From the NCBI GenBank assembly GCA_946965045.2, contig CAMPTO020000006.1:1-12938 (forward strand): a DNA stretch of 12,938 bases, in the 5' to 3' direction. The position numbers and the translations under genes are program-made. The notes beneath the pieces are model-generated. The model saw only the letters and a list, made by a program, of their open reading frames with translations, was not told the DNA's origin and searched no databases. Origin of the DNA: Epithemia pelagica (taxonomy: Eukaryota > Protista > Bacillariophyta). Of the stretch, positions 1 to 12,938 are shown in pieces. Within the stretch, counting starts at the first letter, position 1. The number at the start of each line of letters is the position of its first letter.

Positions 1-50
1 GAAGCAAAAAAACCCACACAACAACAGCAGAAGTTTAGAACCACATTCAG

Positions 51-87
51 ACCCTGACCCAACTCCAACAAGGGGCCCCTGTCTTGT
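51..87 (+). promoter_or_regulatory. 37-nt upstream element (Pol III-class), copy 1, upstream of U6
   Basis: ACCCTGACCCAACTCCAACAAGGGGCCCCTGTCTTGT; 32/37 identical to copies 3 and 4; ends 24-25 nt before U6. Confidence 0.8.
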
Positions 88-111
88 CAACCACCTTGTG
101 CATATATACTG

Positions 112-215
112 GACCCCAGAAATGGGACATCCGTTAAAATTGGATCGATACAGAGAAGATTAGCATGGTCCCTGCGCAAGGATGACACGCATTAATCGAG
201 AAAGTATCAACTTTT
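112..215 (+). ncRNA. U6: U6 snRNA
   Basis: ACAGAGA box 150-156, AGC triad 162-164, ISL GGTCCCTGCGCAAGGATGAC, T9 at 212-220; the 3' CGAGAAAGTAT pairs 10/11 with the U2 5' end; 5' end +/-1. Confidence 0.98.
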
Positions 216-387
216 TTTTTGTCCCCCGGATCACACGTATTTTTTACACTGGTGTCTTCTTCATGCTTCCCAGACCAACACATATGTGCAGACATACCCA
301 TCACCCACAGGTGGCAAGTGGCAGGCTGCAGTAACCCATTGAAATATTGGTTTCAAAAAACGACCATATGCTTTATGCTACTGGCAT

Positions 388-397
388 GCTTCCCTGA
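388..397 (+). promoter_or_regulatory. -48 snRNA-type upstream element of SL RNA copy 1
   Basis: GCTTCCCTGA, 47-48 nt upstream of the SL 5' end; same motif and spacing as U2/U3/U4/U5. Confidence 0.75.
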
Positions 398-434
398 GCA
401 TATACATGTCGAAAGCTGTGTAGAGAAAAAGAGC

Positions 435-546
435 AACCAACGATTTCTAAAGCTACAGTTTCTGTACTTCATTGGTATGGAAGCATGAAGATTACTCTTC
501 TCACACAACTTTGTCAAAACATGGCCGGTTTCGAAAGAGACTGGCC
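435..546 (+). ncRNA. Spliced-leader (SL) RNA, copy 1 (exon 435-474, donor GTATGG at 475)
   Basis: AACCAACGATTTCTAAAGCTACAGTTTCTGTACTTCATTG|GTATG carries the kinetoplastid/diplonemid CAGTTTCTGTACT..ATTG|GTATG core; GAAGA/TCTTC hairpin, Sm-like AACTTTG, GAAA-tetraloop 3' hairpin, T6 at 547-552. Confidence 0.95.
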
Positions 547-639
547 TTTTTTACGTTAGCATGATTGTCTTTGTGTGTCTTTGTGCAAAGCAAAAAAAAA
601 ACACACACAAGAAGTGAGGATCTTCAAAACCACGTTTTT

Positions 640-676
640 GACCTGACCCACCTCCAACTAGACAACCCTGTCTTGT
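640..676 (+). promoter_or_regulatory. 37-nt upstream element, copy 2, upstream of 7SL
   Basis: 34/37 identical to copies 3 and 4; ends 25-26 nt before the SRP RNA. Confidence 0.8.
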
Positions 677-701
677 ATTCCGACAATATGGTATCTATTG
701 A

Positions 702-1013
702 GCCGGGATGTGTTGGCTGCATCCTGAAACCCCTAGCTTCTGGGGGGGCAAGCTTCTCCAGAACTGGGCACTCTTTGAGGTGGACCAAAGGCACCTTCAA
801 CTTCTGTGTTGATGTGTTGTCCGTGTTAGTCTACTGTCCTGTTTGCGGCCTTGGTGTAAACCAGGGCAACAATCAGAGTGAAATGGGGTGAACCGGGCCA
901 GGCTGGTCTCACAGAGCAGCTCATAACTCCTGCAGTGGACAGTTCAAGGATCGCAGCACAGAGCAGAGTGAGGGTGTTTCCAACTCAATGGCTTGAACTG
1001 GAGAAGCGTTTCT
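702..1013 (+). ncRNA. SRP (7SL) RNA
   Basis: Alu-like 5' GCCGGG; helix 6 GCCTTGGT-GTAA-ACCAGGGC (848-867); helix 8 with CAGG (899-902) and AGCAG (915-919); GCTTCTCCAG/CTGGAGAAGC long-range helix; T6 at 1013-1018. Confidence 0.92.
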
Positions 1014-1176
1014 TTTTTACATTTTTCCATGTGAACATTGTTTCCACATCACCATACACATGTGTTGTTGATACACCCCACCACGTTGCCCAGACCATTC
1101 CTACCCACATTATTCACCACAAGTGGCATGTTTACCAGCACATGTTGGTGCTTAGAGCAATGTTAAGAAAAAGGGC

Positions 1177-1289
1177 AACCAACGATTTCTAAAGCTACAG
1201 TTTCTGTACTTCATTGGTATGGAAGCATGAAGATTATATTCTTCTCACACAACTTTGTCAAACATGGCCAGCCTCGAAAGAGACTGGCC
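1177..1289 (+). ncRNA. Spliced-leader (SL) RNA, copy 2 (exon 1177-1216)
   Basis: Exon identical to copy 1; intron part differs in the stem-II loop and stem III; T6 at 1290-1295; -48 motif is degenerate (GTTTACCAGC, 1130-1139). Confidence 0.93.
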
Positions 1290-1361
1290 TTTTTTACGTC
1301 ACCATGAGAAAAAAACATTCACACATATGATGCATGTACAAAGTGCACAGGTGTGTGTGTC

Positions 1362-1398
1362 ACCCTGACCCACCTCCAACAAGACAACCCTGTCTTGT
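1362..1398 (+). promoter_or_regulatory. 37-nt upstream element, copy 3
   Basis: ACCCTGACCCACCTCCAACAAGACAACCCTGTCTTGT; identical to copy 4. Confidence 0.8.
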
Positions 1399-1421
1399 TT
1401 TCCCATACTCTCCCTATGTTT

Positions 1422-1742
1422 GGGTGCTAAGTTAGTGTGCTACTTCGAAACCAAACAACTCGTTCAGCAACAGCTAAAACTTGAAAAGACCTTTCTTATC
1501 AGAAAATTCTTTACAATTTTTATGATGTGTCCTGCTGTGGCCTGATATGGCCCAAGGCGGAACCACTTTCATATGATGTAAATCCCGTACGTTCGTACAG
1601 AATATTACCCATGATGATTATTCTTACATTAGCGTGTAACACTAATTCTGACTGCGTTCTATTTCACACTTCAAATATTAGAACTGGATGTGGGGCTGCC
1701 AGTTTACTGGTGGTCCCGATCCAGCACACAACGCAAGCACCC
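1422..1742 (+). ncRNA. Orphan ~320-nt structured Pol III-class RNA, vault RNA-like candidate
   Basis: Starts 24 nt after the 37-nt element; GGGTGCT (1422-1428) pairs with AGCACCC (1736-1742); second stem GTT(A)GTGTGCT/AGCACACAAC; TACTTCGA at 1441-1448; T6 at 1743-1748. An RNA is likely; its identity is tentative. Confidence 0.65.
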
Positions 1743-1814
1743 TTTTTTATATTACCCCACCCAGTACCCCCCCTGTGTCTGTGTTGTTGCCTAAAAAAGC
1801 ATCACCTTTTACAG

Positions 1815-1824
1815 GCTTCCTTGT
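1815..1824 (+). promoter_or_regulatory. -48 snRNA-type element of an orphan small RNA
   Basis: GCTTCCTTGT; +48 lands on A1863. Confidence 0.5.
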
Positions 1825-1862
1825 GGGGAGTGTTCGGTCAAGTGATAGTGATGAAGAAGGAC

Positions 1863-1927
1863 AGGGGCGAGTTTTCTCGTGAAATGCTTTGAAGCCTCTG
1901 ACATTGAGAGGCTCGCTCCGACCTCTG
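1863..1927 (+). ncRNA. Orphan ~65-nt snRNA-class RNA candidate
   Basis: -48 motif; GGGGCGAG (1864-1871)/CTCGCTCC (1912-1919) stem; AGCCTCT/AGAGGCT hairpin (1893-1913); GTTTTTAA 3' signal like that of U3. Confidence 0.5.
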
Positions 1928-1957
1928 TTTTTAATAACCCTTACCGGTAACCACTGT

Positions 1958-1990
1958 GTATGTATGGTATGTATGGTATGTATGATATGT
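1958..1990. repeat. GTATGTATG microsatellite (3 units plus a degenerate unit)
   Basis: Direct reading. Confidence 0.85.
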
Positions 1991-2025
1991 TGCCTTTGTG
2001 TGTTTGTTTTTGTTTTGTTAAAAAA

Positions 2026-2215
2026 GAGGGTATGCCACTCCTGGATGTTGTGCAGCTCCAGGGCAACATGTGTGAACGGACCAGGTTGCCCTGGCGACCC
2101 GTCACCCCAATGAGAAATTGCGTTAATATCATCAGTGCACAAGGCACTGTATCAGATATTAAGCTGATAAGAACAGATAATACACTTGATCTTAGCCAAA
2201 AGGCCGAGAAGGTAT
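2026..2215 (-). ncRNA. U2: U2 snRNA
   Basis: Reverse complement begins ATACCTTCTCGGCCTTTTGGCTAAGATCAAGTGTATTATCTGTTCTTATCAG; stems IIa/IIb, III and IV present; ~190 nt; T6 follows. Confidence 0.97.
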
Positions 2216-2253
2216 GACTTCTTTTTAGTCCATACCAAATTCGACACCCATGT

Positions 2254-2263
2254 ACAGGGAAGC
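2254..2263 (-). promoter_or_regulatory. -48 element of U2
   Basis: GCTTCCCTGT exactly 48 nt upstream of 2215; near-duplicate at 2311-2330. Confidence 0.8.
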
Positions 2264-2364
2264 ATGATGATGATCAATATTACTAGGAAACAACAAGGCA
2301 AACAGATTACACACCCATGTCACAGGGAAGTGAGCGAAGGTGATGATCAATCGTAGTAAAAACA

Positions 2365-2507
2365 AGGCCGCCGAAGCAGCTACACAAATTGCCAATGTGG
2401 CAACGCCGAAGCGGCCCATGGCGGGAATTGGGTAGTTTTCAACCAGCAATCTCTCCACAGCGTCCCTATTTGGTCATTGCTTATGGAATTATCCCGAGCG
2501 CAAGAAT
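2365..2507 (-). ncRNA. U4: U4 snRNA
   Basis: 5' ATTCTTGCGC pairs with U6 GCGCAAGGAT; TTGCTGGTTGAAAAC (stem I); CCCGCCATG; Sm AATTTGTG; 3' GCTGC-TTCG-GCGGC; T5 follows. Confidence 0.96.
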
Positions 2508-2545
2508 ACCTCCTTTTCTCCCAGTCGTGTCACAAAGCTATGTCA

Positions 2546-2555
2546 ACAGGGAAGC
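2546..2555 (-). promoter_or_regulatory. -48 element of U4
   Basis: GCTTCCCTGT exactly 48 nt upstream of 2507. Confidence 0.8.
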
Positions 2556-2620
2556 GTGTTGGGGTGGTAACATAAAGACACCACGTAAAGCTAACACACC
2601 AGAACTACCACCACCAATGT

Positions 2621-2630
2621 GCCTCCCTGT
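2621..2630 (+). promoter_or_regulatory. -48 element of U3
   Basis: GCCTCCCTGT exactly 48 nt upstream of 2669. Confidence 0.8.
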
Positions 2631-2668
2631 AGACATCTGTGCAGCCGATAGGTGGAACAAACAAGGGC

Positions 2669-2878
2669 AAGACTGTACTCTACACAGGATCTGTTTTTGA
2701 GTGCATTCGTGTTGAAGATTGTTTTCTTCGGCACAAGACCAAAGCTGGATGATGACATAGGTTGGGCATGTGCAGCATGAGCACTTGCGATGATTGTCAC
2801 ATACTTCTTGTATTGTTTTGTCTCTCCCCTGTATGGCGCAGGGAAGAGTACCAGGCACAGCCCTTCCACTTACAGCTT
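2669..2878 (+). ncRNA. U3: U3 snoRNA
   Basis: 5' AAGACTGTACTC..AGGATC (GAC/A'/A boxes); C' GATGATGA at 2748-2755; B/C CATGAG..GATGA at 2776-2793; terminal stem AAGCTG/CAGCTT; 210 nt; T5 follows. Confidence 0.9.
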
Positions 2879-2980
2879 GTTTTTAAGAAAAACCTCAAAA
2901 AAGGCTTCACATTACTTTTTTCACCTTCAAGGACATCTTGATCAATCAAGAAGTTACCACACTATCCTCGCTCTCAACAT

Positions 2981-2990
2981 GCTTCCATGT
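2981..2990 (+). promoter_or_regulatory. -48 element of U5
   Basis: GCTTCCATGT exactly 48 nt upstream of 3029. Confidence 0.75.
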
Positions 2991-3028
2991 GTAGCAAAGT
3001 GCATACAGCAATAGAACAAAACAGAGCC

Positions 3029-3138
3029 ATATCACGGTTCTTGCCCATATCGAACTCATCTTTCGCCTTTTACTAAAGATGACCGTGGGTAAGAGCCACT
3101 AAGTGAAAGCATAATTTTTGAAGGGGCCTTTGTGTCTC
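3029..3138 (+). ncRNA. U5: U5 snRNA
   Basis: Loop 1 GCCTTTTAC (3065-3073) in an ATCTTT/AAAGAT stem; Sm AATTTTTG at 3113-3120; short 3' hairpin. Confidence 0.96.
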
Positions 3139-3166
3139 ATCTGTTTTAAGTCTTGACAACCACTAC

Positions 3167-3176
3167 GCTTCCCTGA
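3167..3176 (+). promoter_or_regulatory. -48 element of U1
   Basis: GCTTCCCTGA; +48 predicts a start at 3215. Confidence 0.7.
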
Positions 3177-3214
3177 AGGTGTTGGAGTTTCGCATGTTGT
3201 TAAACTCAGCTAGA

Positions 3215-3375
3215 GGTTACATACCTTACTGGTGTCTGACCTGATCAACAAGGGCGTCGACACACCAGTGGCCCTTGCATTGCACTGCGCAGGGGATACT
3301 GGTGGCACTAGCTTCGGCTGGCTTGCACAGTGAAATTTTTGACAGCGGCGGTGCTGTGCTTTGCACAAACCCGCC
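3215..3375 (+). ncRNA. U1: U1 snRNA
   Basis: ACATACCT at 3219-3226; helix H ACTG/CAGT (3228-3231/3328-3331); 70K-like loop GATCAACAAG; U1A loop ATTGCACTGC; Sm AAATTTTTG at 3333-3341; GGCGG/CCGCC stem IV; 5' end 3214-3217. Confidence 0.93.
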
Positions 3376-3598
3376 TTTTTAAACAAACAAACCAAAACAA
3401 ACGTGATCACACAAACCATCATGTTACCCAGTAAACCCAGTAAACCCAGCACACTGGTCTAGAGGGATCGACCACTGAGTGGTGACCTGTGAGCACACAG
3501 GCACCTGCTCCGATGCAGTAGTGCAGCGCACTAAGTGCTGTGCTAAGGACTGGCCAAACTTGTTAAACCTGCTGACCCACAAACCGGTTTTCACAACC

Positions 3599-3643
3599 GA
3601 AGCAAAAACAAGCTCAGAAATAAAAAGCTCTTCAAAGGTTTTC
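3599..3643 (+). repeat. 45-nt block upstream of 5S copy 1
   Basis: Identical to 4354-4398; both end 17 nt before the 5S gene. Confidence 0.85.
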
Positions 3644-3660
3644 GAACCTGACTCAGTATT

Positions 3661-3780
3661 GGATTCGGCCATACTCTGGTGAATACACCTCATCCCGCCT
3701 GATTTGAGAAGTTAAGCACCAGCAGGCCTGGATAGTACTGGCGTGGGTGACCAGCTGGGAAGTCCGGGTGCTTGAATCCT
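3661..3780 (+). rRNA. 5S rRNA, copy 1
   Basis: GGATTCGGCCATAC...GAAGTTAAGC...TAGTACT...GGGAAGTCC...GAATCC; helix I GGATTC/GAATCC; T-run follows. Confidence 0.98.
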
Positions 3781-3824
3781 TTTTGCTTTTCTTCCGTGTT
3801 GGTGTGTGGTTTTAGGACATCCAG

Positions 3825-3861
3825 ACCCTGACCCACCTCCAACAAGACAACCCTGTCTTGT
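3825..3861 (+). promoter_or_regulatory. 37-nt upstream element, copy 4
   Basis: 37/37 identical to copy 3; no known RNA gene downstream. Confidence 0.8.
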
Positions 3862-3885
3862 ATCCCTGTGTTTGTTGCACTATCC

Positions 3886-4262
3886 AGAGAGCAGAAATGA
3901 GGGGAGACTACACCACCGACGGTGCTTCAGCCTACAGGAGCATGCTGGAATGTGAATGCTGCATGACAGCATTCACAATTTCACCTTTGGTGAGATGGAG
4001 ATGAGCGCAAAGGTGCAAAAATGCACAACAAAAACTGAGGAAGAGGCATCCATACTCCCCAGAAGGGACGTGCGCACCTGCAGCCAAAAATTCTCCTGTG
4101 CTTAATATCATGCGCGCTGGGGATGCCGAAATAGCTAAACTGTTGCAAGAAGTGGGACTAATTCCCAGGCAGTTGCCCTGTACAACATGCAAGTCCACAA
4201 TGCCAGAAACACTGTACTGGACACCAAGATACTCCAAGAAGATCGCAAACTGGCCTTATTTT
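3886..4262 (+). ncRNA. Orphan Pol III-class transcript candidate (~375 nt)
   Basis: Starts 25 nt after the element; first T4 at 4259-4262; 9-bp end-closing helix 3894-3902/4254-4262; perfect 11-bp hairpin 3951-3977. Alternatively a decayed transposase (see findings). Confidence 0.4.
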
Positions 4263-4353
4263 AGGTGAAATGACCTAATGCAGAGTGCAGCGGAACAGGG
4301 GAGACAAATAAAGTTTCCTGTACCATGCAACACCCAAGACCTTTTGCACAAGT

Positions 4354-4398
4354 GAAGCAAAAACAAGCTCAGAAATAAAAAGCTCTTCAAAGGTTTTC
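4354..4398 (+). repeat. 45-nt block upstream of 5S copy 2
   Basis: Identical to 3599-3643. Confidence 0.85.
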
Positions 4399-4415
4399 CA
4401 CCCAGACCCATTATT

Positions 4416-4535
4416 GGATTCGGCCATACTCTGGTGAATACACCTCATCCCGCCTGATTTGAGAAGTTAAGCACCAGCAGGCCTGGATAGTACTGGCGTG
4501 GGTGACCAGCTGGGAAGTCCGGGTGCTTGAATCCT
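4416..4535 (+). rRNA. 5S rRNA, copy 2
   Basis: Identical to copy 1; T6 follows. Confidence 0.98.
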
Positions 4536-4617
4536 TTTTTCCTTATTTGTGGTGTAACACACAGAAGTTGGTTGAAAAGTGAACTGATAGTATTCAGCGC
4601 AAAGCATGATTATTGAA

Positions 4618-4689
4618 GGGTATATAGCTCAGTGGTAGAGCATTCGGCTGCAGTCCGAACGGTCCCTGGTTCGAACCCGGGTGTGCCCT
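4618..4689 (+). tRNA. tRNA-Cys(GCA)
   Basis: Cloverleaf; TTCGG-CTGCAGT-CCGAA; U73. Confidence 0.97.
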
Positions 4690-4790
4690 CTCTTTTTGTT
4701 TCAAGACCAGATTTTCTCTTGAGTGTTACTTCTCCCTTTTTGGTTTTGAATTCCATCCCCACCTTGTAAAGATTCGTTTAAGAAATGTAA

Positions 4791-4863
4791 GGGGGTTTAG
4801 CTCAAATGGTAGAGCGCTCGCTCAGCATGCGAGAGGTAGAGGGATCGATACCCTCAATCTCCA
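4791..4863 (+). tRNA. tRNA-Ala(AGC), C33
   Basis: CTCGC-TCAGCAT-GCGAG; G3:U70. Confidence 0.96.
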
Positions 4864-4954
4864 AACATTTTTTGGCTTGGAAACACTGTTGTGATATTTC
4901 CAGATCTCGATTCTTTTTGGTACCAAAGAAAAAGAAGGAAGCGACAGAATTGTA

Positions 4955-5026
4955 TCTCCTATGGTGTAGTGGTTAGCACTCGAGACTCTGAATCTCGCGA
5001 CCGCGGTTCGAATCCGCGTAGGAGAA
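4955..5026 (+). tRNA. tRNA-Gln(CTG)
   Basis: CGAGA-CTCTGAA-TCTCG; acceptor TCTCCTA/TAGGAGA. Confidence 0.96.
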
Positions 5027-5119
5027 CTTTCCTTTTTCTCCATTTCGTCCCTTGTTATTCTCCTCTATGACTGGTTGAAACACATTCCCACTTCCATATT
5101 CTTGTTGGCTTTTATTGAA

Positions 5120-5201
5120 GGCGAGATGGCCGAGTGGTCTAAGGCGCCAGGTTAAGGCCCTGGTCCCTTCGGGGGCGTGGGTTCAAACCCCACTCTCGTC
5201 A
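5120..5201 (+). tRNA. tRNA-Leu(AAG)
   Basis: CCAGG-TTAAGGC-CCTGG; long variable arm. Confidence 0.97.
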
Positions 5202-5290
5202 CTTGTTATTCTTTTTCATTTTCATTTTCAATCTATCCCTTTTGTTTTGTTTTCAAGATTGTGCAAAACACAAAAAGCACACTTGTCAGG

Positions 5291-5363
5291 TCCTCCTTGG
5301 CGCAGTCGGTAGCGCGTCAGGCTGTTAACCTGCAGGTCGTTGGTTCGAACCCAACAGGAGGAG
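5291..5363 (+). tRNA. tRNA-Asn(GTT), copy 1
   Basis: TCAGG-CTGTTAA-CCTGC; identical to 10735-10807. Confidence 0.96.
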
Positions 5364-5422
5364 ACTTTTTTCCCTTCTCAAACCATTTTCTGTTCTTTGC
5401 AAAAGTCATAAAAAACTGGGAA

Positions 5423-5504
5423 GGCGAGATGGCCGAGCGGTCTAAGGCGCCAGGTTTAGGCCCTGGTCTCTTCGGAGGCGTGGGTTCAAACCCCACTCTC
5501 GTCA
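5423..5504 (+). tRNA. tRNA-Leu(TAG)
   Basis: CCAGG-TTTAGGC-CCTGG; long variable arm. Confidence 0.97.
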
Positions 5505-5568
5505 CGTTATTACCATTTTTCCGCAGAAAACCCACCTCTTGTGGAAAACAGTTCCGGTCATTATTGTA

Positions 5569-5641
5569 GCAGCTATCGTCTAGTGGTTAGGACGCTCGCC
5601 TCACACGCGAGAGATCGTCGGTTCAATCCCGACTAGCTGTA
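5569..5641 (+). tRNA. tRNA-Val(CAC)
   Basis: CTCGC-CTCACAC-GCGAG. Confidence 0.97.
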
Positions 5642-5731
5642 ATTTCTTTTTGAACTTTCCTTCACATTTTCGTTCAATGCAACGATCGAAAAGATGTCCC
5701 CATGCAGATAATAGTTTTGCCTACTATCAGA

Positions 5732-5803
5732 TCCGCTGTAGTATAGTGGTTAGAACAGCCGGCTCTCACCCGGCAGACCGGGGTTCAATTCCCCGCAGCG
5801 GAA
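5732..5803 (+). tRNA. tRNA-Glu(CTC)
   Basis: GCCGG-CTCTCAC-CCGGC. Confidence 0.97.
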
Positions 5804-5897
5804 AATACCTTTTTTTAGACCAAGTTTTGGAGAGAAGAATTTCTGACTTTTGAATATTAACGCCATCATGTAAATCTGGATGAAGAAAATAATCAGT

Positions 5898-5969
5898 GGC
5901 TTAGTGGTCTAGTGGCATGATTCTCGCTTCGGGTGCGAGAGGTCCAGGGTTCGATTCCCTGCTGAGCCC
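5898..5969 (+). tRNA. tRNA-Pro(CGG)
   Basis: CTCGC-TTCGGGT-GCGAG. Confidence 0.97.
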
Positions 5970-6036
5970 CTCTTTTTATTTAGGTAGTTTCTTGCTTGGG
6001 AATTGTTTAGAAAAATTATTTCCACATCTTTTCGAC

Positions 6037-6126
6037 CACCAAAATCCCAAGATGAGGAAGTTTGGAAAAGTGCATTTTTGTGAAAGTATTTTGCCATATC
6101 TTTGTTGTCACCAAAATCCCAAGATG
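6037..6126. repeat. 18-nt direct repeat CACCAAAATCCCAAGATG (6037-6054, 6109-6126)
   Basis: Exact match, 72-nt period. Confidence 0.8.
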
Positions 6127-6183
6127 GTGAGAGAATCTTGAAAAATCATTTTCCATATTTTCACTTCCCAGTGAAAAAGAGAA

Positions 6184-6256
6184 TACCCATGGTGGGGATC
6201 GAACCCACAATCTTTCGCTTAGGAAGCGAACGCCTTATCCATTGGGCTACACGGGC
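6184..6256 (-). tRNA. tRNA-Arg(CCT)
   Basis: TTCGC-TTCCTAA-GCGAA. Confidence 0.97.
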
Positions 6257-6362
6257 CTAATAGTTTTACCTTCTTTCCTTTTCTCTGGGGTGGTCAAATT
6301 TAGGACAAGAGACTTTTCTGCATGACCACCCCACAATGATTCTTTGGTTTAAATGAATGTGA

Positions 6363-6435
6363 GCCTCCCTAGCTCAGTCGGTAGAGCGCAAGGCCCTTAA
6401 CCTTGTGGTCGCGGGTTCGAGCCCCGCGGGAGGTG
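6363..6435 (+). tRNA. tRNA-Lys(CTT), copy 1, C33
   Basis: CAAGG-CCCTTAA-CCTTG; identical to 11364-11436. Confidence 0.96.
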
Positions 6436-6701
6436 CTTTTCTTTTTGAATGTTTACGATTTTGCAGGTTTCTGAGATTTTGAGGCAAATGAAAACCAAAA
6501 AATATTTCCTCCACTTGATCTCAGTTCTGTTTCGTTGGCAAGTTGAGAGTGGAATTTGGGTGAAAATATGTGTTTTCCGAACCAACACAGGACTCCCACC
6601 GACCGGTGTAGGTTTTGCGTTCAACCAGGTGTGAACTGCTTCCACTCGCGAAAAGTGCCAGACCCTTTTGCTGGGGATAGCACGTTTCAGCCCCACAACT
6701 T

Positions 6702-7214
6702 ATCTCCTTTCTGGGCATGTCCAGTGTGCTCAGCTGCCGCTTCTTGGCGACTCACCAGTACAGAATGGTGGAATCCAGCACAGAATGGAATGGCTGGGAA
6801 ATCCTTAGCAATCCATAATTCAGATGGAAAAACTCCTGACCTGGCTATTGAATTTTCGGATCATTTTCTCAGTCACAATGCAAGCACAGAATGGAAACCA
6901 AAACCAAGCACAGAATGGAACACGGCTATAAGACTCCAGCCATTCCATTCTGTGCTGGTTTTTCGTTTCCATTCTGTGCTTGCATTGTGACTGAGAAAAT
7001 GATCTGAAAATTCAATACCCGGGTCAGGAGTTTTTTTTTCCACTCCTAACAAATCCTTACAGTAAGCCTATAAGTCTCCAGCCATTCCATTCTGTGCTGG
7101 TTTTTGGAGCCCATTCTGTGAGCACTCGCTCGGGCCTGTACTGGAGTATAGCGGCCAGGCCATCTCCCTTCTGCGTTCCTGCCTGTCACATCCAGTGCTC
7201 AGTTGCTGCTTCTT
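6702..7214. repeat. Nested foldback element: ~95-bp inverted arms 6826-6920/6943-7041, outer 23-bp IR 6775-6797/7078-7100, flanking imperfect direct repeats 6702-6745/7162-7214
   Basis: Direct comparison of arms; CAGAATGG/CCATTCTG sub-repeat occurs four times per side. Confidence 0.9.
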
Positions 7215-7255
7215 CAGCACAACCGCATCACACATCACATCACCAAAAAATAGAA

Positions 7256-7327
7256 AGGCAACTGGGGGGATCGAACCCCCGACCCTTGGTTTACAAGACC
7301 AATGCTCTGCCACTGAGCTAAATCGCC
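7256..7327 (-). tRNA. tRNA-Thr(TGT)
   Basis: TTGGT-CTTGTAA-ACCAA. Confidence 0.97.
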
Positions 7328-7409
7328 GCTGATTAAGATGCTTTTGCTGTTTCTCCTGCGAAGAAGTTTTTCAAGACAACACAGAAAGGAAAGTGTGTAA
7401 AAAAAGAAA

Positions 7410-7480
7410 TGACCCTAGACGGAATCGAACCGCCGTTGATGGATTTGGAATCCATAGTGCTACCGCTACACCATAGGGCC
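7410..7480 (-). tRNA. tRNA-Trp(CCA)
   Basis: ATGGA-TTCCAAA-TCCAT; 71 nt; A73. Confidence 0.93.
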
Positions 7481-7565
7481 CATGATTTAGGGCTTCAATG
7501 CGTTTAGCATGAAGGTGGAAATTTTGCTGAAAATCCCACACAAAGGAAAAAGACACACAAAAAAG

Positions 7566-7638
7566 TGCGAGGTGCCAGGATCGAACTGACGACCTTAGGA
7601 TTATGGGACCTACGCGCTCCCGACTGCGCCAACCTCGC
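7566..7638 (-). tRNA. tRNA-Met(CAT), elongator type, C33
   Basis: TAGGT-CCCATAA-TCCTA; U31:U39, G1-C72 and T54 indicate an elongator. Confidence 0.95.
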
Positions 7639-7762
7639 CTTGATATTATCGTATCATTAAGAAATACATGGGGTGCAAATTTCTACAGGTTTGTGTGGCA
7701 AAAAAATTTTTTTGAGCCAAAAAATTTTATGGGCTTCTGTGAAAACAATGACAGTTGTAGAA

Positions 7763-7846
7763 CCTCTCGTAGCTCAATTGGTAGAGCGCTCGACTGTAGA
7801 ATACTCGGTTATCGAGCGGTCGCTGGTTCGATTCCGGCCGAGAGGA
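7763..7846 (+). tRNA. tRNA-Tyr(GTA) with 11-nt intron (7800-7810)
   Basis: CTCGA-CTGTAG[AATACTCGGTT]A-TCGAG; 73+11 nt. Confidence 0.96.
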
Positions 7847-7923
7847 TTTTTTTCGTTTTCGTGTTCCAGATTATTTTCTGCAAACAGATGACTGCCTAAA
7901 AACAAAGAACGGTGAGAATTACA

Positions 7924-8005
7924 GCAGTCGTATCCAAGTGGTTACGGAGGTGGACTAGAAATCCATTGGGCTCTGCCCGCGCAGGTTCAAGTCCTGCCGA
8001 CTGCG
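7924..8005 (+). tRNA. tRNA-Ser(AGA)
   Basis: GTGGA-CTAGAAA-TCCAT; long variable arm; G73. Confidence 0.97.
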
Positions 8006-8103
8006 ATTCATTTTTTGTTCACGAATTTTCGTGCATTTTCGTCGTTTCTGTGCTCATTTTAGACCATTTTGATGCGCGAAATTAAATCAGAGTGAAGATT
8101 GTA

Positions 8104-8175
8104 TCCTCGGTAGTATAGAGGTCAGTATTTCCGCCTGTCACGCGGAAGACCCGGGTTCAATTCCCGGCCGGGGAA
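8104..8175 (+). tRNA. tRNA-Asp(GTC), A73
   Basis: TCCGC-CTGTCAC-GCGGA. Confidence 0.95.
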
Positions 8176-8237
8176 TTCTTTTTTGTACAGGGCTCCCACT
8201 CATTGTTTCGTTTCTTTTCTGATGAAAATCAAATCAG

Positions 8238-8310
8238 GCCCCGTTGGCGCAATGGATAGCGCGTTGGACTTCGAATCCAAAGGTTGCGGGTTCGAGTCCC
8301 GCACGGGGTT
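8238..8310 (+). tRNA. tRNA-Arg(TCG)
   Basis: TTGGA-CTTCGAA-TCCAA. Confidence 0.97.
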
Positions 8311-8595
8311 AACTTTTTGAACATTGTTTTTTTGAACTTTTTTGAAACACAAAAAAGTGAGAGGTTGGTGTCAAATGAATTACAGTGACAAGTTACAGTC
8401 ACAACAGATAAAAACATTGGGTCCAGTGGGAAGGGGTCACCCCGGGATTTTGGATTTTTTGGTAGTCAACCCACCCATAAGAACCTTGAAAAAATTTTGG
8501 GAAAAACTTGAAAACTGGAAATTCTTTGAAAAGCTGACATTTCAGAAAAAATTTTCTGAACATGAAAATTTTGCTTCCCCCTTTAAAAAAAGAAC

Positions 8596-8667
8596 TGCAC
8601 TTACCGGGAGTCGAACCCGGGCCGCTCGCTTGGAAGGCGAGAATACTAACCGTTATACCATAAGTGC
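8596..8667 (-). tRNA. tRNA-Gly(TCC)
   Basis: CTCGC-CTTCCAA-GCGAG. Confidence 0.97.
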
Positions 8668-8756
8668 TGTTACTTTCATGCAAAGTGTTTTCTTTGTGAG
8701 GGGCGATTTCAAAATGAAAATAATTTCAAATTCTTCAAATTGCCTAAAAAAAGAAG

Positions 8757-8828
8757 CAACCGTGGCAGGACTCGAACCTGCAACCGCCTGATCCGTGGTC
8801 AGGCGCTCTTCCATTGAGCCACACGGTC
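8757..8828 (-). tRNA. tRNA-Arg(ACG), C33
   Basis: CCTGA-CCACGGA-TCAGG. Confidence 0.96.
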
Positions 8829-8917
8829 CATGTCTTTAGGCAATAGTATTTTTTATGTGGCCTGCATATTTTTGGAGTTGAAAAAAAAATTTAGACGGTT
8901 GATTGTACAGCTAAAAA

Positions 8918-8990
8918 AGCGGTTACCGAGAATTGAACTCGGGTCTCCCGTGCCACAAACGGGTGTTCTAAACCACTAAACCATAACCGC
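8918..8990 (-). tRNA. tRNA-His(GTG), U73
   Basis: CCCGT-TTGTGGC-ACGGG. Confidence 0.96.
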
Positions 8991-9106
8991 TTGAATATTC
9001 CCACTTATTGGGATCTCAGAAAGGGTTTTATTTCGAGGGATATTGTGAAATATTTTTCAACCATGCAACGAGCGGCAACTCGAGCACAATTTCGACTAAT
9101 ATCGTA

Positions 9107-9176
9107 GCGTAATTGGTCTAGTGGTAGAATGGCCCCCCGCCACGGGGTCGGCCGGGTTCGATTCCCGGATTACGCA
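9107..9176 (+). tRNA. tRNA-Gly(GCC), C33, 3-nt variable loop
   Basis: GCCCC-CCGCCAC-GGGGT; 70 nt. Confidence 0.93.
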
Positions 9177-9416
9177 CTCTCTTTTTGCGATTGACAAAAG
9201 CAAAACAATATGGTTTCGGACAGTTTCAGGTCAGTCACAAACTCGTTCAAAACGAAAAAGTGGAAATGATATGTACTCTTTCTTGTGTAAGGATTCTTAG
9301 TGGAGAAAGAAATTTTTTGTCTGATGCCGGTTTTTGCTCGACATAGTAAGTCAGTTCAGTCACAACTTCCGTCACAATCGAAAAAAAAATTTGACTCATA
9401 TGTTTATAAACCCATG

Positions 9417-9653
9417 CTGACTTACATGTTTATTTGTTCACAAAAATCCCAGTTCATAAACATGTAAGTCAGTATGGCCGCTCTGGTGGCCGCATGTTTT
9501 TGGGTTAACTTACGTGTTTATGAAAAACCTGACTTACATGTTTATTTGTTCACAAAATTCCCTGGGTTAATAACCATGTAAGTCAGGTTTTTCATAACCA
9601 TGTAAGTCAGGTTGGGACTACAACATGTTCATAAACCCAACCTGACTTACATG
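9417..9653. repeat. Array of three perfect inverted repeats built on the 12-mer CTGACTTACATG
   Basis: 17 bp 9417-9433/9456-9472; 23 bp 9518-9540/9575-9597; 18 bp 9599-9616/9636-9653. Confidence 0.92.
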
Positions 9654-9722
9654 TATATTTCTTCACAAAATTCCCAAGATATGGCCGGTGCACTGGTCAG
9701 AGACATCACGTTTGCGGGCCAA

Positions 9723-9836
9723 CCCCCCTGTGCGCCCGATTAGCTTACCCCCCTGTGCGCCCGATTAGGAATACCCCCCTGTGCGCCCGATTAGGGATCC
9801 CCCTGTGCGCCCGATTAGCTTACCCCCTGTGCGCCC
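9723..9836. repeat. GC-rich ~25-nt tandem repeat C5-6TGTGCGCCCGATTAG, 4 full units plus 1 partial
   Basis: Units at 9723, 9748, 9774, 9799 and 9823, separated by CTTA/GAATA/GGAT/CTTA. Confidence 0.93.
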
Positions 9837-9862
9837 ACCTACCTAGTCACTGTGACCAGGTG

Positions 9863-9882
9863 CCTGGTCAGATCTGACCAGG
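9863..9882. repeat. Perfect 20-bp palindrome CCTGGTCAGATCTGACCAGG
   Basis: Self-complementary; half-sites also at 9693-9701 and 9853-9860. Confidence 0.9.
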
Positions 9883-10196
9883 TACCCTTACTAATATGCC
9901 TTACCAATATGGCCAGGGGTGTGGTATGTTGGGTGCACAAGGGAGTTTCACGATGGGGGAATACATGCTGGACATGTGCCTTATCTTATGCACAGGTGCA
10001 ATGGATGGCATAGCAAACCCGTATGCCCATTGCGTGTGTGGGTTTGCTGGCCTAGGACTGTACGGAAAGTGCACGGGTCCACCACAGTACAACCAGTCAT
10101 GCACCAAGGGCAACTGGCTGTTTTATCAATTTTTGAACTTTTTTTTAGACATTGCCAAACCTTCTCCATAATCTGAGATCTTGGGAAACAAGATAA

Positions 10197-10268
10197 GCTC
10201 GCGTGGCGCAATGGAAGCGCGTCGGTTCCCGACGCCGGAGGTTGCGGGTTCGATCCCCGCCGCGAGTA
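10197..10268 (+). tRNA. tRNA-Arg(CCG), C33
   Basis: TCGGT-TCCCGAC-GCCGG; Arg-like body with D-loop AATGGAA. Confidence 0.9.
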
Positions 10269-10379
10269 CTTTTTGTTCATTCCAAAATATTTTTAGATTT
10301 CCTCCTTTGCCAAATTGAAAATTCAGAAATGCGAAAATATCAAAAAACAGCTCCGAAATTTGAAAGCAATTAAAAAGGA

Positions 10380-10451
10380 TTCCCCCTCCGGGGTTTGAAC
10401 CCGGGTCGCCTGGGTGAAAGCCAGGTATACTAACCACTGTACTAAAGGGGA
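10380..10451 (-). tRNA. tRNA-Glu(TTC)
   Basis: CCTGG-CTTTCAC-CCAGG. Confidence 0.97.
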
Positions 10452-10548
10452 GGTGATACTTAGGCACAATCCAAAAAGGGTACTTTTGTGCAAGGAACAC
10501 GGAATTTCAAACGAAAAAATAAATAAAAATGAAAATCCAAAAAGACAA

Positions 10549-10620
10549 GGGCTCGGCGGGGAATTGAACCCCGGACCTCTCGCACCCTAAGCGAGAATCA
10601 TGCCACTAGACCACCGAGCC
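10549..10620 (-). tRNA. tRNA-Pro(AGG)
   Basis: CTCGC-TTAGGGT-GCGAG. Confidence 0.97.
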
Positions 10621-10734
10621 ACGAATTCTCTCGCATTCTCTTCGTAACGCGGCCATAAGTTTCCATCATTCCTTGTGTGTGTTTTCGTTTTGAATAAGGT
10701 CCCCATGTAAATGCTGTCTTCGCTAACAATCAGA

Positions 10735-10807
10735 TCCTCCTTGGCGCAGTCGGTAGCGCGTCAGGCTGTTAACCTGCAGGTCGTTGGTTCGAACCCAACA
10801 GGAGGAG
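10735..10807 (+). tRNA. tRNA-Asn(GTT), copy 2
   Basis: Identical to 5291-5363. Confidence 0.96.
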
Positions 10808-11061
10808 ATTTTTCATTTTTTTGAGTTTTTGATTCTATTTTTGATTTTGAGCTAAAAATCCACATTGTGTGTCATCTTGATGTTGAAACTATTTTTCAGA
10901 TTTCCAAGGTTGTCTCACCAAAAAAACCAAACATCTTGAATGCTGTCCTAACTTGGAGATTGTTGACCTGAAGATAAAACAGATTTTGTCAGGTTTTTTT
11001 TTTTGAGTTTGAAAAAGTTCAGAACAGAATGAAAAAAGGGATCGATGCAGTGTATAAAAAA

Positions 11062-11143
11062 CGCGAACGGCAAGGTTCGAACTTGCGCATGCAGAGCACA
11101 CTCGCTTAGCAGGCGAGCCCCGTAACCACTTGGGTACGTCCGC
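11062..11143 (-). tRNA. tRNA-Ser(GCT)
   Basis: CTCGC-CTGCTAA-GCGAG; long variable arm. Confidence 0.97.
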
Positions 11144-11363
11144 TTAATTACCTGTCAGTACTTAGGACGAAGCTTGTACTTTGTTTAACGACACGTTAGT
11201 GATCACTTGTGTGGTCACCAAAAATCATCGCAATTGTGACCACCAAAAAAATTTTTTGGGCACGATTTCGCGCGATGGTGAGCTCATTGCACGACGGCCG
11301 ACACACCATGTTTTCCAACAAATTTAAAAAATTCCAGAAAAATTCAGGTATCAATACAAAAAG

Positions 11364-11436
11364 CACCTCCCGCGGGGCTCGAACCCGCGACCACAAGGTT
11401 AAGGGCCTTGCGCTCTACCGACTGAGCTAGGGAGGC
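11364..11436 (-). tRNA. tRNA-Lys(CTT), copy 2, C33
   Basis: Identical to 6363-6435, opposite strand. Confidence 0.96.
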
Positions 11437-11538
11437 TCATATTAACTTAAATCAAAGAATCAACGTGGGGTACTTGTGTGTACCTGCAACCACCAAATTT
11501 TCCATCGTTGTTGCGTGAACAAAAGGATCCGGATTATC

Positions 11539-11610
11539 TCTCCTATGGTGTAGTGGTTAGCACCCTGGACTTTGAATCCAGTAGCCGCGGTTCAAACCCG
11601 CGTGGGAGAA
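11539..11610 (+). tRNA. tRNA-Gln(TTG)
   Basis: CTGGA-CTTTGAA-TCCAG. Confidence 0.97.
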
Positions 11611-11724
11611 CTTTTCTTTTTCCAAGTGTTTTCAATATTTTTTGGAGCTTTGTCACACACATCTTCAATCTCTGCATTTGATGACAAAACATAGATCACA
11701 GAAATCAAACGAAAAGGTAAAGAA

Positions 11725-11806
11725 CGCTGACGGCAGGGTTCGAACCTGCGCGGGCAGAGCCCAGTGGATTTCAAGTCCACCTCCGTAACCACTTGGATAC
11801 GTCAGC
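11725..11806 (-). tRNA. tRNA-Ser(TGA)
   Basis: GTGGA-CTTGAAA-TCCAC; long variable arm. Confidence 0.97.
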
Positions 11807-11882
11807 ATAGTTGAGGAAGTACAACGCCCCAGATCCTGAAAATGAGCGCAAAAAGAGAATCCAATTGATCCAAAAAAGTAGG

Positions 11883-11954
11883 CACCCGCCGTGGGGATCG
11901 AACCCACGACCATTGGATTAAAAGTCCAACGCTCTACCGCTGAGCTAGGCGGGC
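11883..11954 (-). tRNA. tRNA-Lys(TTT)
   Basis: TTGGA-CTTTTAA-TCCAA. Confidence 0.97.
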
Positions 11955-12067
11955 ATTCGTTTTAAAGGAAAGAGTCAATTTCAAGGCTTGTTGCGTTCTT
12001 GAAAAAAACTGACAAAAAGACGAACAGAAAGTGCCCCAAGTACGTCTCCTTGAGGGACATTTATCAG

Positions 12068-12139
12068 GGGCGTTTAGCTCAGTGGTAGAGCGCCCGTTCT
12101 GCATACGGGAGGCCGAGGGTTCGAACCCCTCAATGTCCA
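12068..12139 (+). tRNA. tRNA-Ala(TGC), C33
   Basis: CCCGT-TCTGCAT-ACGGG; G3:U70. Confidence 0.96.
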
Positions 12140-12239
12140 TTTTTTTGCCTTATTTTGTTGATTATTTTTTGGTTGGGCCAGTTAACACACAAAAATATGA
12201 ACTGGCACCATTGTGCAGTGCCTGCGATGAGGATGTGTG

Positions 12240-12659
12240 TGATGGTCCAATTGGCGAGTCTGATGTCATAATGTGTTCAGGAACATCCAAATGACCCATT
12301 TTCCCAACGTTTTCACATTTTTGAGCATTTTGCTATTACGCAATAGTGGTACAATAGGCATTTTACTGGGTCATTTTAACCAACTCTATCAGGACACTTC
12401 TGATGCTCCAATTGGCGATTCTGACCTCATAATGGCTTCATGAGCAGCCGAATAACCCGTTTTCCAAATATTTTCACATTTTTGAACATTTTGCCATTCG
12501 TGGAATGGTGGCACAAAAGTCATTTTACTGGGTCATTTTCGCCAACTCGATCAGGGGACACTTCTGGTGCTCCAATTTGCGGTTCTGACCTCATAATGGA
12601 TTCAAGAGCACCCAAATAACCCATTTTCCCAACGTTTTCACATTTTTGACCATTTTGCT
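12240..12659. repeat. ~161-164-nt imperfect tandem repeat, ~2.6 copies
   Basis: CCAATT anchors at 12247, 12408 and 12572; TTTTCACATTTTTGA and CATTTTACTGGGTCATTTT recur. Confidence 0.9.
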
Positions 12660-12764
12660 GTTGCAGAGTATCAGTAAGATGAGGTCATGCAAATACAGTT
12701 TTGTGCACAACAGAAAAAAAATAGTGTGTACCCCAGGTTGGCGATTCCTTTCGTCATTATTGTC

Positions 12765-12837
12765 GGTCGTGTAGCTCAGTCGGTAGAGCATTGGTCTAAT
12801 AAGCCAACGGTCCCAGGTTCGAGCCCTGTCACGACCA
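12765..12837 (+). tRNA. tRNA-Ile(AAT)
   Basis: TTGGT-CTAATAA-GCCAA; C49:U65 mismatch in the T stem. Confidence 0.94.
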
Positions 12838-12915
12838 ATACTTTTTCTACTACTTTGACTTTGACCTGTTCAAAAAATGTTGGCCGTGTAAAAAATATGC
12901 ATACCCTAAAACAAG

Positions 12916-12938
12916 GCCTCTTTAGCTCAGTTGGGAGA
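12916..12938 (+). tRNA. 5' part of a tRNA, truncated by the window edge, probably Phe
   Basis: GCCTCTT-TA-GCTC-AGTTGGGA-GA; the D-loop is typical of eukaryotic Phe; anticodon not visible. Confidence 0.7.

Follow-up and report, generated by a model that had tools for sequence, protein, structure and literature searches.

The window, by which we mean the whole stretch of 12,938 nt analysed here, carries on its plus strand a locus that is very probably a real, expressed and strongly structured RNA gene of the RNA polymerase III (Pol III) class. The predicted RNA (hereafter the candidate) has paired ends that are most like those of trypanosome vault RNA (vtRNA), a likeness that is not proven. Our preferred reading, which we hold tentatively, is that the candidate is an enlarged vault-type (TEP1-binding) RNA of its lineage and a relative of the trypanosome vtRNA. 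Since internal boxes, size and covariance model all fail, we stop short of treating it as a confirmed vault RNA family member. Formal membership aside, it may function like a vault RNA.

Results

A small-RNA gene cluster read as diplonemid-type

The first 4.6 kb of the window form a dense cluster of small-RNA genes, beyond which a tRNA array extends until the window ends inside a further tRNA gene. Apart from the candidate, the genes are as follows.

112-217, U6 (Rfam)
435-553 and 1177-1295, plus strand, two spliced-leader (SL) RNA genes of ~115 nt, with a 40-nt leader at 435-474 and 1177-1216
702-1009, SRP RNA (Rfam)
2025-2215, minus strand, U2 (Rfam)
2368-2507, minus strand, U4 (Rfam)
2669-2878, U3, a weak match (Rfam)
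3030-3140, U5 (Rfam)
3217-3375, U1 (Rfam)
within 3575-3789 and 4330-4544, two 5S rRNA genes, in a 215-nt direct repeat of 93% identity
3886-4262 (3828-4262 with its promoter), plus strand, a second orphan RNA, with an exact 33-nt promoter and ~375 nt to a T4 run
4618-12938, both strands, array of 33 tRNA genes over 8.3 kb, covering most amino acids

The 5S repeats are spaced 755 nt apart and flank the second orphan RNA.

The lineage was read from the SL RNA genes. Their leader, AACCAACGATTTCTAAAGCTACAGTTTCTGTACTTCATTG, is followed by GTATGG, and the arrangement AACCAACGATTT...ATTG, then GTATGG, is the spliced-leader pattern of kinetoplastids and diplonemids. The first 12 nt of the leader and its core match the sole Diplonema-type entry, "Euglenozoa 14" (PMC3795323). 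In addition, the snRNAs of the window are canonical in length, as snRNAs are reported to be in Diplonema, unlike in kinetoplastids (PMC10161547 supplement). The SL pattern and the snRNA lengths together lead us to read the window as DNA from a diplonemid-type euglenozoan. This SL pattern conflicts with a diatom assembly, and the 12.9-kb piece may be a short contig of a co-cultured or contaminating diplonemid-like flagellate.

A putative Pol III unit of 321 nt

An initial annotation had described an orphan Pol III-class RNA of ~320 nt behind a perfect promoter copy. Both the promoter class and the terminator agree with this description, and the unit can be drawn as follows.

1365-1397, plus strand, 33-nt upstream promoter element of the Pol III class, CTGACCC...CTGTCTTG
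1422-1742, plus strand, predicted 321-nt RNA
1743-1748, plus strand, T6 terminator directly after C1742, read from the sequence

The element at 1365-1397 is indeed identical to a copy at 3828-3860, which precedes the second orphan RNA. A further copy, with one mismatch, stands before the SRP RNA (643-675), and a more diverged one precedes U6 (54-86). Shuffled sequence gave no matches to the 33-nt element, and none is expected by chance. The distance from the end of the element to the start of the RNA is 25 nt for U6, 26 nt for the SRP RNA and 24 nt for the candidate, with G1422 as its first nucleotide. The two ends of the candidate are predicted in different ways, the 5' end from this promoter spacing and the 3' end from the position of the T6 run, a terminator of the same kind as those at the SRP, U6, 5S and tRNA genes of the window. 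From an element shared with U6 and SRP RNA at equal spacing, together with the T6 run, we infer that the candidate is transcribed by Pol III.

The ends of the RNA form an interrupted helix

The minimum free energy (MFE) of the whole RNA is -96.2 kcal/mol (z = -4.77). Its main elements are these.

1422-1441, plus strand, 5' strand of the terminal helix: helix I (1422-1428), loop AA, helix II (1431-1433), bulged A1434, helix III (1435-1441)
1441-1448 (nt 20-27), plus strand, motif UACUUCGA at the inner edge of the terminal helix, read from the sequence
1448-1459, plus strand, single-stranded tract of C and A only, AAACCAAACAAC, with a mean unpaired probability of 0.89
1539-1553, plus strand, small hairpin GGCC/GGCC, present in the MFE structure
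1587-1598, plus strand, small hairpin GUAC-loop-GUAC, stem strands kept in relatives
1624-1639, plus strand, small hairpin UUACA-loop-UGUAA, which differs from the MFE pairing
1653-1730, plus strand, block invariant in diverged relatives (X18/X19 contigs)
1685-1723, plus strand, 3' hairpin of 17 bp with one bulged G, -26.0 kcal/mol, adjoining the terminal helix and invariant in relatives
1723-1742, plus strand, 3' strand of the terminal helix: helix III (1723-1729), helix II (1730-1732), loop GCA, helix I (1736-1742)

The first 20 and the last 22 nt pair as an interrupted helix of 17 bp, in the order 7 bp, an internal loop (AA/GCA), 3 bp, a bulged A and 7 bp. Of 2000 arm shuffles, one matched the energy of this end duplex, -25.9 kcal/mol; among 2000 pairs of window segments lying 300 nt apart, none did. 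The terminal helix is far beyond chance. Much of the architecture proposed in the initial annotation was recovered here: the 7-bp terminal stem was confirmed at 1422-1428 with 1736-1742, and the long 3' hairpin given as 1685-1724 was found at 1685-1723. A second stem of 10 bp, said to be built from an A-box-like segment, is also present as a stem (3 bp, a bulged A and 7 bp; 1431-1433 and 1435-1441 with 1723-1732), although its A-box label did not survive scoring, which gave a chance value (see below). The interior of the candidate is AU-rich and variable, and direct repeats of 5+4 or 8+3 nt occur within the C/A tract (1448-1459).

RNA libraries and natural variation

The candidate stretch was matched in sequencing runs of 14 studies, the best run covering at most 0.79 of the sampled words. 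When contigs of four of these runs were aligned to positions 1020-2020, all aligned contigs fell within 1422-1742; the flanks and the adjacent SL gene had none. One contig, from a metatranscriptome, spans 1501-1741; two from a second RNA study span 1595-1682 and 1653-1742; and 1595-1730 is found in two further runs. Two contigs stop exactly at the predicted 3' end (1741/1742), bearing in mind that contigs cannot prove transcript ends. RNA libraries contain at least the 3' three quarters of the candidate. The 5' 79 nt are absent from the RNA contigs, and no aligned contig of the four runs extends upstream of about 1469; these 5' ~50-80 nt may either differ more from strain to strain or be poorly represented in the libraries.

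The contigs also reveal how the RNA varies. Those of runs X18 and X19 carry three substitutions and five gap letters in 1595-1652 and not a single change in 1653-1730, while further upstream the relatives drop below 80% identity. In the relatives represented by X14, X18 and X19, the loop of the GUAC/GUAC hairpin (1587-1598) changes from GUUC to AAUCU with both stem strands kept, as seen in a loose-end consensus. A 2-nt deletion at 1631-1632 in relatives turns the loop of the UUACA/UGUAA hairpin from UUAGCG into UUCG and leaves the stem intact. In run X10, a natural G insertion after position 1538 would pair with C1553, extending GGCC/GGCC. These three natural variants respect the small hairpins. 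In one metagenome scan, a 19-mer taken from the invariant hairpin hit 15 loci, each a chance match of 19-21 nt, and scans of viral and prokaryote genomes for the hairpin, the promoter and the SL gave no match.

Family searches and promoter boxes

Rfam was searched at gathering thresholds and at E≤10 with the whole window, with positions 1-4620, and with the isolated stretches 1410-1755 (346 nt) and 3870-4290. The candidate matches no Rfam family, with Vault, RNase P, RNase MRP, 7SK, Y RNA and the telomerase families included, and this holds at E≤10 for the isolated 346 nt, which leaves it an orphan as first described. The Vault model (RF00006), to which the initial annotation had pointed, gives nothing at E≤10 on the isolated stretch. 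Neither does Rfam hold, even at E≤10, a better match to another family such as telomerase or MRP, which the initial annotation had named as a finding that would refute the vault label. 7SK RNA was set aside, with no Rfam match at E≤10; to our knowledge, the 7SK family is known only from animals.

The vault-like layout had originally been argued from an A-box stem and from a degenerate B-box lying just before the 3' strand. We scored both with A-box and B-box matrices derived from the 33 tRNA genes of the window itself. The sequence proposed as a B-box, GGTCCCGATCC, does stand at 1712-1722, but it scores 0.17 bits versus 10.8-18.6 bits for the tRNAs, and the proposed A-like segment scores -7.5 bits or less. 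Anywhere in the candidate, the best A-box (4.2 bits, p = 0.37) and the best B-box (3.9 bits, p = 0.27) are no better than in shuffles. Measured against the window's own tRNA genes, both boxes are thus at chance and the argument from layout fails with them.

Three further searches were negative. A duplex search against U1, U2, U4, U5, U6, SL, SRP, U3 and 5S gave no z beyond -1.2, with a method poorly suited to RNAs of such lengths. The candidate shows no similarity to the second orphan RNA (3886-4262), whose own fold is weak (z = -1.3) and which has no Rfam match at E≤10 (3870-4290) and no P/MRP motifs. A literature string search for the promoter, the candidate RNA and the T. brucei vtRNA ends found nothing.

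The paired ends compared with vault RNAs

The vault RNA of T. brucei is TBsRNA-10 (Kolev et al. 2019, as summarised in PMC9326685 and PMC12547018). Its primers are given in Table S1 of PMC12547018 as GGGCGCAAGGATTTCGGATAC and the reverse complement CTGTCCGAAGCCGCAATCGCCCT. Because the two are complementary at their outer ends, we took them as the termini of the RNA, so that the comparator consists of 44 nt of ends only. Both pairs of ends were co-folded, with the following results.

T. brucei ends: (((((...((.(((((((((.&.))))))))))).....)))))
Candidate ends: (((((((..(((.(((((((.&..))))))))))...)))))))

The order of elements is the same in both: helix I, an A-rich internal loop, 2-3 bp, a bulged A on the 5' strand and 7-9 bp. 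In both, too, the internal loop has an AA-containing 5' side and GCA(A) on its 3' side. Helix III is completely different in sequence, with its pairing kept. At the 5' start, the candidate (GGGUGCUAAG) and T. brucei (GGGCGCAAGG) are identical at 5/6 positions, with the pattern GGGYGC.AAG; at the 3' end (ACGCAAGCACCC and CCGCAAUCGCCC, respectively), 9/12 positions are identical, with the pattern CGCAA.C.CCC-U tail. Between the two sets of ends a C4-G pair is replaced by U4-A, a compensatory change.

We then asked how often such a correspondence arises. The end-anchored scores are reached at only 129 (5') and 8 (3') of the 25,854 window positions, and among simulated RNAs given a 7-bp terminal helix, the fraction attaining both scores runs from 1.5e-5 with uniform composition to 2.4e-4 with a G start and GC-rich composition. 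The 44 control RNAs of the window include none that attains both. Two tRNA-Ala genes (4791-4863 and 12068-12139) come close, with an end-anchored score of 14 versus 16 for the candidate; this near-match indicates that the T. brucei ends are tRNA-like and therefore that the null has a heavy tail. The acceptor/T-arm ends of tRNA-Ala resemble the T. brucei vtRNA ends almost as well as the candidate does, consistent with vault RNA termini of tRNA-like origin.

Unanchored local alignments to eight published, primer-derived vtRNA sequences of T. brucei, human and mouse were no better than shuffles (p 0.2-0.9), and the best unanchored local match of the T. brucei ends lies elsewhere in the candidate. 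With these alignments at chance, the vault case rests on positional and structural correspondence, judged post hoc with both sequences in view. We regard the comparison of the ends with T. brucei as moderate, independent support for the vault reading.

Other features set the candidate beside and apart from known vault RNAs. Its 321 nt, far longer than known vault RNAs as the initial annotation had claimed, exceed the longest one reported 1.7-fold and fall outside the range of about 84-190 nt; within Euglenozoa the length of the vtRNA central domain varies, up to ~190 nt in Leishmania (PMC9326685). The candidate and the T. brucei vault RNA are both Pol III transcripts of a euglenozoan, with polymerase and lineage by inference in the case of the candidate. 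However, the candidate is ~3 times longer, and it has an upstream element where the T. brucei vault RNA has a tRNA-type internal promoter. In T. brucei, moreover, the B-box-like GUCCGAAGCC is the 3' strand of helix III, whereas the similar GUCCCGAUCC of the candidate lies in the separate 3' hairpin.

Like the candidate, vertebrate vault RNAs (RF00006) are of the Pol III class, with paired ends and a centre that varies, and their 5' strand carries the octamer UACUUCGA at its inner edge. The octamer, claimed at nt 20-27, was found at 1441-1448. It lies within GGTTACTTCGAC of human and mouse vault RNA (printed in PMC8057075 and PMC11185573), in both of which the motif GGUUACUUCGAC occurs, and its local alignment score is not above that of shuffles. 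Compared with these RNAs (84-140 nt), the candidate has no A or B box, no covariance-model match and a terminal helix of unrelated sequence. Y RNAs, which are bound by Ro60, are likewise Pol III RNAs with a bulged terminal helix, and in them this helix docks a TROVE-domain protein; they are ~100 nt long versus 321 nt, and the candidate has no Y RNA match in Rfam. Trypanosomatids have yielded neither a Ro protein nor a Y RNA, and trypanosome vtRNA is thought to fill the Y RNA role (PMC9326685).

Alternative identities

The initial annotation had ended on a giant vault RNA or a new class, and this pair still spans the two leading readings: the box-based argument for a vault RNA is gone, the match to the T. 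brucei ends provides moderate support in its place, and membership is unproven. Under the second of these readings, which we consider rather unlikely, the candidate would be the founding member of an undescribed, lineage-restricted class of ~320-nt Pol III scaffold RNAs, specific to diplonemids and without kinship to vault, telomerase or RNase P/MRP RNAs. The closed ends and the 3' hairpin would bind protein partners, the tract at 1448-1459 and the invariant loop in 1653-1684 would recognise a nucleic-acid target, and the resemblance to vault ends would be a coincidence or a shared tRNA-like end design. This accommodates 1) the failure of every Rfam family at any threshold, 2) the chance-level unanchored alignments to vault RNAs, the missing A and B boxes and a size outside the vault range, 3) the tRNA-Ala controls that nearly match the T. 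brucei ends, and 4) the second orphan RNA with the same promoter at 3886-4262, which makes at least two unassigned Pol III-class genes. It accounts poorly for an end-anchored match that comes with an identical layout of helix, loop and bulge, a combination unlikely by chance in the simulations (1.5e-5 to 2.4e-4). Furthermore, diplonemids are reported to encode two MVP paralogues and TEP1 (PMC12547018), so that the lineage has the proteins without a known vault RNA, and the candidate would fill this slot. Our literature search found no paper describing a diplonemid vault RNA, telomerase RNA or RNase MRP RNA.

It is improbable that the candidate is a telomerase RNA of the plant/ciliate Pol III type. 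Pol III telomerase RNAs, 160-300 nt long, share their promoter with U6 and pair their 5' and 3' regions over a long range; a boundary helix directly precedes the template, and there is an extended stem resembling P4-P6 (PMC8287931). The candidate resembles those of plants and ciliates in a promoter shared with U6, the closure of its ends, a helix upstream of a C/A-rich tract and a long distal stem. Helix III would be the template boundary and the single-stranded AAACCAAAC(AAC), six nt downstream, the template; the AU-rich interior would form a pseudoknot, the 3' hairpin would be a TERT/LARP-binding stem, and the 5'-3' helix would close the molecule. The tract at 1448-1459 suits this role in being pure C/A, unpaired (0.89) and repeated (5+4 or 8+3 nt), although short internal repeats are common, with 26 in the candidate. 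The telomeric probe used for D. papillatum is (CAAACCCG)n, an 8-nt repeat and not CCCTAA (PMC10161547, supplementary Table S2); the telomere repeat of this species reads GGGTTTGC. Diplonemid telomeres are therefore unusual and not TTAGGG. The repeat CAAACCCG and the tract both contain AAACC. Yet the tract has no demonstrated telomere-repeat match, where a template should span at least 1.3 complementary repeats: it fits neither TTAGGG nor the D. papillatum repeat and would call for telomeres of (GGTTT)n or (GTTTGGTT)n, of which there is no sign, and a CCCUAA-type template for a TTAGGG telomere is absent from the candidate. Several AU-rich crossing helices, among many options, can be drawn as candidate pseudoknots, and the region that would hold them is the part least conserved in relatives. 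No telomerase family of Rfam matches. Trypanosome telomerase RNAs are Pol II transcripts. If true, this identity would overturn the split between Pol II telomerase RNAs (Opisthokonta, trypanosomes) and Pol III telomerase RNAs (Diaphoretickes).

A feature that the initial annotation had overlooked raises another alternative.

1517-1521, plus strand, run of five T inside the candidate, where Pol III might stop too early

Such a run is a genuine difficulty for a Pol III gene in this window, whose tRNA genes have T5 as their most frequent terminator: after 15 of the 33 tRNA genes, the first T run is exactly T5. The other Pol III genes of the window (33 tRNAs, U6, SRP, two 5S and the second orphan RNA) contain no internal T5, and only one tRNA among them has an internal T4. 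Part of Pol III transcription should therefore stop at 1517-1521, and a truncated by-product of ~100 nt is to be expected. That this ~100-nt transcript is the real product, or that the locus is a decaying, functionless copy, is nonetheless very improbable. Against it stands the terminal helix, which pairs nt 1-20 with nt 300-321 and closes right at the T6 run. The RNA contigs over 1501-1742 also cross the T5, so that some read-through occurs. The 3' 78 nt, moreover, do not vary in diverged relatives, and the copy of the promoter is a perfect one.

Finally, RNase MRP or nuclear RNase P RNA, classical Pol III RNAs of ~300 nt with paired ends, is hardly credible as an identity: size, promoter class and a P1/P2-like terminal helix fit, but there is no RNase_MRP or RNaseP_nuc match even at E≤10, a motif scan (CR-I, CR-II, CR-IV, CR-V, GARAR and ANAGNNA) found no CR-I/CR-V within one mismatch, no P4 pairing and no convincing motif set, the 3' hairpin adjoins the terminal helix and so occupies the place of the P4 3' strand/CR-V, and in the euglenozoan T. 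brucei PRORP proteins account for all RNase P activity (PMC3807811).

Discussion

If the candidate is the vault-type RNA that we tentatively favour, a scheme for its life can be proposed. With transcription dependent on the upstream element, the internal A and B boxes known from other vault RNA genes could have decayed and the central domain could have grown. La would bind the U tail first, and the bulged terminal helix (helix I, A-rich loop, helix II, bulged A and helix III) would serve as the docking site for TEP1 with its TROVE domain. The resulting RNP might be stored in vault particles or be active free in the nucleus, as has been proposed for T. brucei, where the vtRNA is required to make trans-spliced mRNA.

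The meaning of the finding depends on which identity holds. Were the RNA not of vault type, it would be an expressed, structured and conserved Pol III RNA without a known family, in a lineage whose members are among the most abundant marine heterotrophic protists. As a vault-type RNA, it would be three times the usual size, with an external promoter and without internal boxes, and it would suggest that the family's conserved core is the bulged terminal helix rather than the A and B boxes. In addition, the proposed connection of vault RNA with trans-splicing could then be approached in a second euglenozoan lineage, one that is genetically tractable.
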